From NCBI RefSeq assembly GCF_000315625.1, contig NW_005434610.1:297698-361697 (forward strand): a stretch of DNA of 64,000 nt, in the 5' to 3' direction. The stretch comes from Guillardia theta CCMP2712 (Eukaryota; Protista; Cryptophyta). Positions within the stretch are counted from its first letter, which is position 1; each line of letters begins with the position of its first letter. Positions 29,769-32,791 of this stretch are shown one piece after another. The notes beneath the pieces were generated by a model. The model was not told where the DNA came from. It saw only the letters and a program-made list of their open reading frames with translations, and did not search any database. The position numbers and the translations under genes were made by a program.

Positions 29769-29961
29769 AAAGGTATGAACAAGGTAGGCGAGCGAGCTTG
29801 GAGAAAAGTTAGCGCCAGGATTTCCTTCTGAACCTTTCAAGTCCAGACCTCGCAAGTGAACCTCGTAGTCCATCGAGTCTGATGGAAGTGTCAAGTATGT
29901 CATTATGGGAGGGTGTGCAAGCAAGACATGGCGAGCGAAAGGACAATTGATTGACTGGGTT

Positions 29962-30140
29962 GTGCTTGTCAAGAACATTTATTAGCTAAACGACACAAAA
30001 CATAAAATTTCAAAATTCTAAATTTTCCGTCGAAATTATGGATCATTGAAGACCCACACGCCAATATTTCCTTGTGTCTGACTCGTACTTCATCCTTTCT
30101 ATGAAGAACAGGTTGAAGTATAACCAGACCCATGTGTGAT
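29962..30140 (-). ncRNA. Putative Fanzor omega-RNA (scaffold plus flanking guide)
   Basis: Immediately 3' of the Fanzor stop. Nested complementary segments: 30055-59/30134-38, 30076-80/30125-29, 30088-93/30101-06, 30111-14/30122-25, and an alternative 30086-92/30114-20. It runs to the element end. Boundaries are inferred. Confidence 0.6.
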
Positions 30141-32068
30141 TCAAGGCCGTTTCAGAAAATCTGGTCGTGCTGGTAGAGACATGTAGCACAATAGAATATT
30201 CATAGCAGCATTGACATCACGAGACTTGATACGGTTTTGAACACAATTGGTGGATCTGCACCATTTCAAACCCCGCACCACTGACACTTCGTCAGCAAGT
30301 ATACCATTCTTGTTGATTTGTTTGCGTCTCAAATCATACAATTCTTGATGACATTGATTGCAACATTTTGTCGTTCTGTATTCATCAACTGCCGTCACCT
30401 CGAAGAAGTTCTGACATCGCCTTTTGATCCATTTTACAGGCACTGACTTCTCTCCACGCCCAGTACAACCGAATGATGCATCACCGTATGCAATTATTGG
30501 ATTTTGATCTGTCCCATTACCTTTCATCTTCTTGAAGAACGTATCAATCGCCTTGTGTTTGTGGATGTAGTTATCCATCTTCAGGCGTGCGAACTTGTTT
30601 TGACAATTGTGTTCGAACAGGATCTCGCTTAGTCTCACCACGGTGTCGATGTATCTTTCAAAGTGATCCAACCGAGACGTTTTTGCTGACACTCTTGCAA
30701 TATCGTTTGATTCTTCTGTTATGCCTTGTCTCCATTTTTCTAACTTGGCGTTATTCCGAGTAATATGAGACTCATGATAGTACTGCCTTCGAGTATATCG
30801 ATACTGCTTTGGTTTTTCTTGACCAGGTATTTGCTCGACACCGCATATCAGTACATTGCGACCAGGATCGATTGCAATAACTCGTCTTGATGACACATCA
30901 CAATCTCTTGTTTTGCTTTTCTTTGTAGTAGTATTGTCTGTCTCATTGTGTATTCTCTTCTTGAACGTCACACAGAGTGCGACTCCGTCAGTCTGTATGC
31001 TATCAACTGTCCCTTTCTTTCTCAAATTTGATTGTAGCTTCAACACCGACAAGAATCGCTTATGTTTTTGTTGTATGAACTTTTTCATGCATTTGCTTTT
31101 CCCACCCTTTGAATATTGCAACAGACCAGATTGATCCATAATGTAGAATAAACCCCAAATGTCTACGCGAATAAATTGTTTGCGTATCTGAAAAATCGGA
31201 GCGATCGTGTATCGATCAGATATATCATGAATCTCCAAAAACCTCAGAACCGAAAAATGGTACTTGACAAGATTTGGCATGTGTAATTGCATCCATTTTT
31301 GCTGTTCAGGGTTTTTCTTGATTTTGTCACGGGCCCATGACAAGTTATAATGATTGTCCCATCCAATGATCTCTTTTTGTTCCCTTATGAAATCAATGAC
31401 ATCCTGTCTTTCGAGAACACGAGTTTTTGGTGGAAAGCTCCATCCGTTTACTGTATTCCGTATATCCTGTATCTCCTTTTCTGAAGAAATCCCATTGAGC
31501 TTTCCCCATTCCTTTATGTATCTAGTCTGTTTTGTCCCATCGTATAGAATATGTAATTTTGGAAATTTGTTGCATATTGATCAGCAGAATAGTACAGTAC
31601 TCGAATATCCCCTTCTTTCCTGCGTTGTATTGGTAGATACTTGTTCCCTTTTTCTTGCCAAAACTCGTCTAAAATATCAAACTGAATTGCATTACCTCTG
31701 CGTTTTTCACCCATCAGAAAACAGGTCCGAAAGAAAACTTTCTCTCCACCATTGGTCTTGACCGTTTCTTCTTGCATCCCTTCTTCTTTTTCTTTGTCTG
31801 TTACTTTTCTAGTACGATTGTATATCTGATCAAACAGCCTTGTAATGTACGTATCATCACCTTGCATTGAATCCTTCTCAAAACACCATAACAATAGATG
31901 ATTGAAGATGATGCTACCTCGATGGCTTATTTTGCTTATGTGTTTCACCCAATCATCAATCACACCGATCATTGTGTGATGTTTGAGATGTTTTTTCAAA
32001 CACATCTTGACAGTCGTCTGTGAATCAGAACAAGACTTTCTTTGTTTTCCTCTTTTCCTTTTCCCCAT
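30141..32068 (-). pseudogene. Fanzor1 RNA-guided RuvC endonuclease (TnpB/Cas12 relative), about 642 aa, with one -1 frameshift
   Basis: RuvC-I VIAIDPG (D 30867-30869), IIAYGDASF, RuvC-II VDEYRTT (E 30381-30383), zinc finger CCNQC...CRSTNC, RuvC-III SRDVNAAMNI (D 30216-30218). ORFs 31514-32068 and 30141-31343 join if one A is added to the A4 run at 31530-31533 (MGQKQTRYIKEW...); the downstream frame is open from 31529. Confidence 0.9.
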
Positions 32069-32210
32069 ATTTGATCAGGGTGAACGCGGGAGCTTCGGAA
32101 GGCGGGAATGAGGGAGGGAGGGAGGGAGGGCGGGAAGAAGGGAGTGATGGAAGGCGGGAGGGAGGATGGGAGGGAGGGAGAGAAGGCGGGAGGGCGGGGA
32201 AATCTTTACA

Positions 32211-32486
32211 GAGCCACAAACCTGGTACCCACCCCTACTCAAGTTCGACAGATAACAAACGGGTAGTTAGACTTCGGATGAAGGCGGGAAGGCGGGAAGG
32301 CCACAAACCTGGTACCCACCCCTACTCAAGTTCGACAGATAAACAAACGGGTAGTTAGACTTCGGATGAAGGCGGGAAGGCGGGAAGGCGGGAAATATTC
32401 GAAGTTTGTTGAGCCACAAACCTGGTACCCACCCCTACTTCTACTTTGATAGATAAACAGACGGGTGTTTAGACTTCGGAAGAATT
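32211..32486. repeat. Three 90-110-bp subterminal tandem repeats upstream of Fanzor
   Basis: ccacaaacctggtacccacccctact...gata(a)aca.acgggt..ttagacttcgga starts at about 32214, 32301 and 32414, interspersed with (GAAGGCGG)n. Confidence 0.9.
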
Positions 32487-32791
32487 GATTTGTACCGGTG
32501 GATTTGCAGGGATGTTCTTTTTTTTTAATCACAACATTCTATATTCTCGTTGCTCCTTTGTTGTTTTACCGTTCGGGGTTTGCACCACACCGCGATTTCG
32601 ACTTTTTTTTTGAGATTCTAATTTTTGGGTCACCATTGGTCATAGTGTGTCACTTAACCATTATATTAAAATCTGAATAAACTCGTGCCAATGCTTTCTG
32701 ATGAGGGCTGCTTTCATACAAGTCCGCCTCAACATTTTTATCTTTTGAATGACGTTTTTTTAGTCCAGAAATAGAGCTTTCATCAAGGCGA

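Follow-up and report, generated by a model that had tools for sequence, protein, structure and literature searches.

A 64,000-nt stretch of scaffold 64 of Guillardia theta CCMP2712 (C64:297698-361697, hereafter the window; contig numbers are scaffold numbers) carries a 2,678-bp element whose only gene, on the minus strand, encodes a Fanzor1 nuclease. Comparison with its relatives in the genome revealed that this locus is a broken member of a Fanzor1-carrying family, called hereafter family A, which is distinct from GtFz1, the well-studied Fanzor1 of the same genome, and is probably mobilised by a piggyBac-like transposase. Fanzor elements as a class are already known; family A adds a naturally intact, uncharacterised Fanzor1 with a D-E-D triad, sharp ends, a compact candidate RNA scaffold and a concrete prediction for the target-adjacent motif (TAM). 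For the window locus the main outcome is corrective. A TTAAT beside the element matches the TAM of GtFz1, and was given a meaning that it does not have by an earlier interpretation of this DNA made from its letters only (the sequence-only reading). Positions are those of the whole stretch, and "Fanzor strand" designates the minus strand of the window.

The genome (87 Mb, 669 contigs) was searched for copies, ends and paralogues of the element. At the DNA level, eight other long copies were found, 93-99% identical overall and more than 99% identical in the body, together with many fragments; compared with each other, copies show 97-99.9% identity; the family A tally is about nine long copies and about 20 copies bearing the Fanzor 3' end. 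In every genomic copy, homology is limited exactly at the positions corresponding to 29983 (TAGCTAAACG...) and 32660 (...CACTTAACCA), so that this comparison defines a non-autonomous transposon at 29983-32660. It is directly flanked by TTAT at 29979-29982 and 32661-32664, and other copies are also flanked by a repeat, NTAT on the plus strand. The ends and the 4-bp target site duplication proposed by the sequence-only reading were thereby confirmed. The imperfect 15-bp terminal inverted repeats it had described are present as well: the ends TAGCTAAACGACACA and TGTGTCACTTAACCA match at 11 of 15 positions, the first lying at 29983-29997 (TAGCTAAACGACACA on the plus strand, Fanzor 3' end) and the second at 32646-32660 (TGGTTAAGTGACACA on the minus strand, Fanzor 5' end). 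An inverted-repeat scan ranked the pair as I9, one of 251 pairs, with 71% complementarity, which alone is not beyond chance. The repeats were accepted as real on the strength of the copy boundaries and of a related 2.5-kb family with the perfect repeat TGGCTAAGTGACACA, to which the Fanzor 5' end is identical at 14/15 positions. Inverted subterminal motifs, also part of the earlier description, are found at 30029-30036 (GTCGAAAT) and 32595-32602 (inverted partner, ATTTCGAC). The window copy is thus a member of a young, multi-copy transposon family.

Depth was measured on read-derived contigs from two G. theta DNA runs. Relative to single-copy flank, it was about 19-fold at the Fanzor 3' end, 10-fold in the body and 5- to 7-fold at the 5' end, ratios that agree with the copy counts of these three parts in the genome. 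The 3' ends are over-represented genome-wide, with 20 occurrences of the terminal 29-mer of the Fanzor 3' end versus 8 of the terminal 28-mer of the 5' end. In eight copies the 5' part is cut off at differing points, and no flank repeats were found there, except for one copy inside a local tandem repeat. This 3' bias resembles that of the Chlamydomonas CRe Fanzor1 families and of the "ghost" loci of Spu-1, a Spizellomyces punctatus element of which many copies likewise consist of the 3' end only. An additional family A copy, with a new flank and again ATAA next to it, was found on a metagenome contig in the European Nucleotide Archive.

The nuclease gene of the window copy is interrupted. It appears as two minus-strand open reading frames (ORFs) of 184 and 400 aa in differing frames. 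Alignment of the nine long copies assigns codons 1-179, the N-terminal REC-like part, to 31532-32068, and codons 180-642 plus the stop, with the WED, RuvC and zinc-finger parts, to 30141-31531 (both on the minus strand). Between them, a homopolymer at 31530-31533 is T4 in the window copy only and T5 in 8/8 other long copies, and this 1-base deletion breaks the frame at codon 180. In the read-derived contigs, which are collapsed over copies, an extra T is present behind 31529 at full depth. The frameshift is real in the assembly, T4 being either a true mutation or a homopolymer assembly error. An intron at this place was ruled out, since the other copies, with their one additional base, all have an open frame here and require no intron. 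Six other copies contain an intact, intron-free ORF of 642 aa (two on C26, one each on C1, C30, C14 and C78), and a seventh, on C6, encodes a 644-aa variant. The element had been called complete; this stands for its ends, its flank duplication and the presence of a Fanzor1 ORF, but the locus is not a complete system: its gene is frameshifted, and intact copies would have to supply the protein in trans. The frameshift had also been noticed earlier and its repair proposed before expression, which the six natural 642-aa ORFs make needless.

By sequence and fold comparison, the protein is identified as a Fanzor1. Two paralogue families of G. theta were used together with family A to build a profile: family B, with many copies (C23, C61 and others), 47% identical to family A in the C-terminal half and with a 59-nt GT-AG intron before its last exon, and family C (C72 and C201), 42% identical. 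Searched against the PDB, the three-family profile matched SpuFz1, the nuclease of Spu-1 (8GKH, E = 1.3e-16). Single-sequence PDB searches with the ORF pieces or the intact ORF gave no match. In the profile alignment, D401 (30867-30869), E563 (30381-30383) and D618 (30216-30218), within the segments IAIDPG, DEYRTT and SRDVNAAMNIL, coincide with the catalytic residues D383, E541 and D606 of SpuFz1; in a BLASTP alignment they also match the D, E and N positions of the GtFz1 triad. A CxxC...C zinc finger lies between RuvC-II and RuvC-III (within 30243-30365), and its cysteines C570, C573 and C604 are invariant in 7 homologues. Pfam gave only a sub-threshold match to the Cas12f1-like TNB domain (PF07282, residues 557-625, 21.8-22.6 bits for a curated threshold of 26.3). 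In a coarse Foldseek search with a low-confidence AlphaFold model, the top seven PDB entries were all Fanzor1 structures (SpuFz, then GtFz, then PpFz; E = 4.5e-11 to 2.9e-8), ranking ahead of Cas12f and TnpB, in alignments of 600-800 columns with a template modelling (TM) score of about 0.2. A large protein database contained four relatives, of which two are metagenome sequences (one near-identical, the other 87% identical) and two are 37-38% identical, one of these from the cryptophyte Hanusia phi. Judging from these matches, the lineage is apparently confined to cryptophytes.

SpuFz1 (Saito et al. 2023) is thus the closest solved relative by both profile and fold search, and several features are shared with it: a canonical D-E-D triad, an element that holds one ORF and spans about 2-2.7 kb from inverted end to inverted end, and conserved bases just upstream of the 5' end. 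The differences are also marked. Identity between the proteins is about 15%, the ends differ, the TAM-reading residues of SpuFz1 are not kept in family A, and the flank is ATAN rather than the CA + TA of Spu-1. Guide RNA and TAM were measured for SpuFz1, whereas those of family A are predicted only. Neither N-terminal peptides nor scaffolds of family A were found in the parts of the supplements of Saito et al. that were available, which is not proof of their absence there.

The sequence-only reading had matched its TAM to the one reported for G. theta Fanzor1. According to it, the TAM of the window element would be the TTAAT located 5' of the repeat on the Fanzor strand, equivalent to the TTAAN measured for GtFz1 (Saito et al.), and the guide would start with the repeat itself (ATAAATGTTC...). 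In its favour, TTAAN is indeed the TAM of a Fanzor1 from the same species, and reconstruction of the empty site gives, on the Fanzor strand, ...TTTTAAT-ATAA-ATGTTCTTGACAAG, i.e. TTAAT-ATAA-ATGTTC, as had been stated. However, GtFz1 is a distant paralogue. It corresponds to a 690-aa ORF on C7 identical to PDB 9CER, and its guide RNA starts at C7:896451, as listed by Saito et al. for NW_005434667. BLASTP of GtFz1 against the intact family A protein detected 22% identity over 320 residues, in the RuvC half only, and no similarity in the N-terminal half, where GtFz1 reads its TAM. A phmmer search with the family A protein did not match 9CER even at E = 10. GtFz1 has a D-E-N triad (N658), and its TAM is read by S123, H126, Y130 and Q278 (Xu et al.). 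The residue of family A that aligns with N658 (NRNVAGAFNIL) is D618 (SRDVNAAMNIL), so that family A has no D-E-N triad. The RNA scaffolds differ as well: the start of the GtFz1 scaffold is found in the genome on C7 and C345 only, and the family A 3' region is unrelated to it. On these sequence comparisons, family A is not a GtFz1 orthologue and the GtFz1 TAM is not transferable to it.

The copies of family A were then compared at the position in question. The five bases 5' of the repeat are TTAAT in the window copy, and ACTGT, GTACT, GACCC, TTTCT, TTTAC and AAGAC in the other six complete copies. TTAAN is therefore present in 1/7 copies in the register of the sequence-only reading, and in 0/7 directly 5' of the flank that follows the repeat. 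Because none of the six other complete copies has TTAAN there, the TTAAT of the window is a coincidence at one locus, in a flank so AT-rich that a single TTAA is unremarkable. Moreover, structures of Fanzor complexes assign the target duplication on the 5' side to the TAM and that on the 3' side to the scaffold (2026 review PMC13565253, section 6.2), so that a guide starting with the ATAA repeat would be about 4 nt out of register. Taken together, the TTAAT interpretation is highly improbable.

GtFz1 and family A share the genome, the Fanzor1 class and an expected guide RNA at the 3' end. They differ in that the 139-nt GtFz1 scaffold overlaps coding sequence, and in that Saito et al. saw no inverted ends at GtFz1 loci, which family A has. 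On C345 (L036, the C7 locus being L035), the 3' region and scaffold of GtFz1 are present a second time, with a 21-nt insertion. Homology between C7 and C345 stops at ...CTCTAA-G and ...CTCTAA-A, one base short of the published scaffold end, so that the GtFz1 copies, like those of family A, stop being alike at a junction, here TAA-N.

The junctions themselves suggest another motif. On the Fanzor strand their layout is Y-ATAN-TGGTTAAG...TTTAGCTA-ATAN-flank. Among 20 Fanzor-3' junctions and 7 intact 5' junctions of family A, ATA was found at 19/20 and 7/7, respectively, and never in the opposite orientation. The N of ATAN was A in 13 cases, T in 4, C in 1 and G in 1, and the two sides of a copy agreed at N in 4/6 pairs. 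The two exceptions are reciprocal, with ATAA...ATAC at L003 (C78) and ATAC...ATAA at L004 (C14); they may go back to heteroduplex resolution after integration of the piggyBac type, to copies that exchanged sequence, or to a chimeric assembly spanning the repeat. The 5' repeat is preceded by a pyrimidine in 7/7 copies, and the 3' repeat by the element's own A. Family B has a similar layout with TTAN (T-TTAT...TTAT and C-TTAA...TTAA).

For Spu-1, a conserved CA precedes the 5' repeat, and the TAM of SpuFz1 is CATA (Saito et al.). The TTAAN of GtFz1 would follow the same rule, as one upstream T plus a TAA-N junction, because its copies diverge at ...CTCTAA-N. Combining this rule with the published register, (Y)ATAN is predicted as the recognition motif of family A, with a guide starting 4 nt later than in the sequence-only reading, whose underlying principle, a guide derived from the 3' flank and a TAM located 5', agrees with published models. 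At the window locus, the predicted motif core is the 5' flank repeat (32661-32664, ATAA on the Fanzor strand) with the pyrimidine at 32665. The 3' flank repeat (29979-29982, TTAT on the plus strand, ATAA on the Fanzor strand) would probably form the last 4 nt of the guide-RNA scaffold, and the guide is predicted to start at ATGTTCTTGAC, from 29978 downwards, being encoded by the flank that follows this repeat (29959-29978, ATGTTCTTGACAAGCACAAC on the Fanzor strand).

A candidate scaffold is provided by the 158-nt 3' untranslated region (UTR) of the gene (29983-30140, minus strand). Its predicted fold is more stable than all of 200 shuffled sequences (z = -4.35, 0/200), and consists of three hairpins ending at the element boundary. 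The last one pairs the subterminal CGACG with GUGUCG of the terminal repeat, the complement of the 30029-30036 motif forming its 5' arm. The UTR is 100% identical among young copies. An equivalent region of family C (143 nt) is also predicted to fold (z = -4.95). A consensus structure for the three families was attempted and set aside: with three sequences and a poor alignment, no covariation was trustworthy. Rfam assigned no family to the element, and one sub-threshold snoRNA-like match (E = 0.45) was disregarded. The 158-nt region would be transcribed together with the adjoining flank as guide RNA, and the scaffold, including the 3' flank repeat, would end with ...GCUAAUAN.

Transcription was inspected in about 6% of the reads of one raw RNA run, apparently a short-read, 3'-biased library. 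Reads pile up on the plus strand at 29978-30022 and carry non-templated poly(A) beyond 30022. Loose ends of these reads agree with the flanks of other copies, chiefly that of a fragment on C82 with C>T at 30001. From these read-in ends and the poly(A), host transcripts run into the element and receive their poly(A) 40 nt from its end, antisense to Fanzor. For such read-in transcripts the Fanzor-3' end thus serves as an antisense polyadenylation site.

Since the element contains no transposase gene, we looked for relatives of its ends. An exact search with the end consensus retrieved the 2.5-kb family mentioned above, which is non-coding, has perfect 15-bp ends (L043 on C14, L044 on C157 and L045 on C199) and subterminal palindromes built on GTCGAATTCGGCCCAC. 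Its flanks are CTAG/CTAG at L043 and L044, and mismatched (TCAA, ATAG) at L045, beside a run of N. A 2.9-kb element on C8 (L056) contains a 399-aa ORF with the piggyBac-type domain PF13843, between ends CCTTTAAWCGACAAA and flanks ATAA/ATAA. The L056 end is identical to the 5' end of family B, and its subterminal sequence recurs in the 2.5-kb family. In addition, one family-A-type end, with the perfect repeat of the 2.5-kb family, lies 3.5 kb from a piggyBac-type ORF (PF13843, E = 5.7e-16); this was so for only 1 of 11 piggyBac-like loci, and no second end was found there within 10 kb. The 4-bp duplications of the group are centred on TA (ATAN and TTAN in families A and B, CTAG at L043 and L044, ATAA at L056) and are variants of the canonical TTAA. 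A piggyBac-like mobiliser for this group of elements is likely from these sequence similarities; for family A itself they come down to the 14/15 end match and the N-TA-N 4-bp duplication. The element would then be moved in trans. Three unrelated elements (L039 on C191, L040 on C15 and L041 on C131) resemble the Fanzor 3' end in their terminal 23-46 nt only, are likewise followed by ATA-N, and are probably further passengers of the same transposase.

Short inverted-repeat elements containing Fanzor1 and flanked by AT-rich 4-bp duplications with a variable last base have been described before: Sola2-type DFa/PPa elements, with imperfect inverted ends of 12-21 bp and AWWT or ATAT duplications, and insect-virus elements, with 13-bp ends and TTAN, exactly as in family B (Bao and Jurka 2013). 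Family A might therefore belong to Sola2 or another non-piggyBac superfamily with such duplications, its piggyBac likeness being coincidental, and the sharing of only 15 nt with the piggyBac-linked families, together with the single locus out of 11, would fit this. On the other hand, the PF13843-encoding element has the very end of the sister family B and a 4-bp flank repeat, subterminal sequence of this element recurs in the family whose ends are perfect TGGCTAAGTGACACA repeats, and Repbase is reported to list piggyBac-Fanzor elements. The ends of the G. theta elements are linked to PF13843 elements and not to Sola2, and their host is a cryptophyte, outside the scope of the 2013 paper. Assignment to a non-piggyBac superfamily is accordingly regarded as distinctly unlikely.

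Excision by piggyBac-type transposases is scarless, and the excised element keeps its 4-nt flank as overhangs that pair with the target. Such biochemistry could explain why the flank is family-specific and fixed in orientation, why the repeats of two copies differ only at N, and why removing the element and one repeat gives the right empty site. If the piggyBac link holds, scarless excision would make these elements a good natural case in which to ask if a Fanzor restores excised transposons.

The following scheme brings these elements together. The bases recognised would be the 5' flank repeat and its pyrimidine, the 3' repeat belonging to the scaffold. The guide ATGTTCTTGAC... would target the precisely excised site ...T-ATAA-ATGTTC..., reading ...ACATTTAT-ATTAAAA... 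on the plus strand, and would spare the filled site, in which A-ATAA precedes the same target. If the empty site were cut and then repaired with a filled copy as template, the element would be regained (restorative homing). As the duplication is 4 bp long, filled and empty sites can be distinguished only by a base that lies beyond the repeat; if the scheme is true, a single base there (Y versus A) would tell them apart. This resembles homing by the TnpB proteins of IS200/IS605 elements, in which the guide derives from the flank at the right end, the motif is that of the insertion site, and scarless excision recreates the target. Unlike in IS200/IS605, the transposase likely to act here is of the DDE (piggyBac-like) type and generates a 4-bp duplication. 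To our knowledge, homing has been shown for no Fanzor so far.

Several observations weigh against this scheme. The empty allele implied by the sequence-only reading was not seen in read-derived contigs or genome: no DNA contig from the two G. theta data sets joins 29982 to 32661, the filled junctions are present at single-copy depth, which confirms the filled state, and there is no empty paralogue in the genome. Neither the end-pattern search nor the PF13843 loci yielded a full autonomous partner with the exact ends of family A, which shares only the 15-nt end with the piggyBac-linked families. The pyrimidine rule comes from just 7 junctions. The residues by which SpuFz1 reads CATA (Q129, Q130, N133) are not conserved in family A, in an alignment that is weak. 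The AlphaFold model has low confidence (mean predicted local distance difference test, pLDDT, of 52), so that the N-terminal part was weakly tested. Among intact copies, the ratio of non-synonymous to synonymous substitution rates (dN/dS) is about 0.65, over 18 variant codons, and does not demonstrate selection on the gene. Finally, sense coverage of the element in the RNA run was close to nil and the 29959-29978 flank was not covered at all, which neither favours nor rules against a small guide RNA.

Some of these facts, the near absence of RNA and the dN/dS value, would be expected if the Fanzor gene were passive cargo with no role in homing, either for want of a functional guide RNA or because the nuclease has another function, and if ATA-N reflected target choice by the transposase alone. 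The three unrelated elements that share only 23-46 terminal nt and also adjoin ATA-N point the same way, as the flank follows the end sequence there and not the Fanzor gene, and Saito et al. reported no clear biological role for the G. theta loci. Yet the six intact 642-aa ORFs and the 644-aa variant have complete catalytic residues, the 3' region is strongly structured, perfectly conserved and ends at the boundary, and the pyrimidine that precedes the 5' repeat is not mirrored by a purine behind the 3' repeat, an asymmetry unexpected of a symmetric transposase. Passive cargo is thus considered unlikely. The joint explanation, in which a SpuFz1-like Fanzor1 element is moved in trans by a piggyBac-like transposase, makes its guide RNA at the 3' end, recognises (Y)ATAN and homes, appears probable.

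A broader version of this explanation is possible but doubtful. At least two, perhaps three, Fanzor1 lineages of G. theta might ride piggyBac-like elements, each with a flank of its own (ATAN, TTAN and possibly TAAN for GtFz1). In family A, which alone has enough copies for the orientation test, the flank keeps one orientation relative to the gene and, with its upstream pyrimidine, would be the nuclease motif. If so, flank and motif would be inherited together, in what would be a DDE-transposon version of TnpB restorative homing. The presence of family A in the same genome as GtFz1 means that a single organism could show the TAM tracking the insertion-site motif.

Family A sequences were also met outside the G. 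theta assembly. Freshwater, lake and runoff metagenomes (runs X6-X13) contain 21-52% of the words of the element. In X6, the element is found with the flanks of the G. theta loci L029 and L007, and the flanks of the window are not covered; this type of signal may come from a Guillardia-like organism in the samples, or from carry-over. The 87% identical protein variant is encoded on a Joint Genome Institute (JGI) metagenome contig (JGI 3300016466, L064), where about 110 nt of the 3' UTR, comprising the two inner hairpins, are missing, and where the element end is followed by TCAG and not by ATAN.

One copy has an unusual right end. At L007 (C6), the last 7 nt of the 5' end (TTAACCA) are missing, and a 10-bp direct repeat, CCTCTTATAT, replaces the 4-bp one. 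This looks like an aberrant insertion, and it was seen in independent read sets (contigs of X1, X2 and X6, at window position 32653).

Upstream of the ORF, the window copy contains a (GAGG)n tract and an 88-bp tandem repeat (together 32110-32389). The tandem repeat (32213-32389, minus strand) differs in copy number between element copies and may consist of promoter-region repeats. Two motifs of this region, CTTCCCGCC and GTTTGTGGC, are found again in front of the family B gene (L031:1700-1790), and may be promoter elements shared by the two families.

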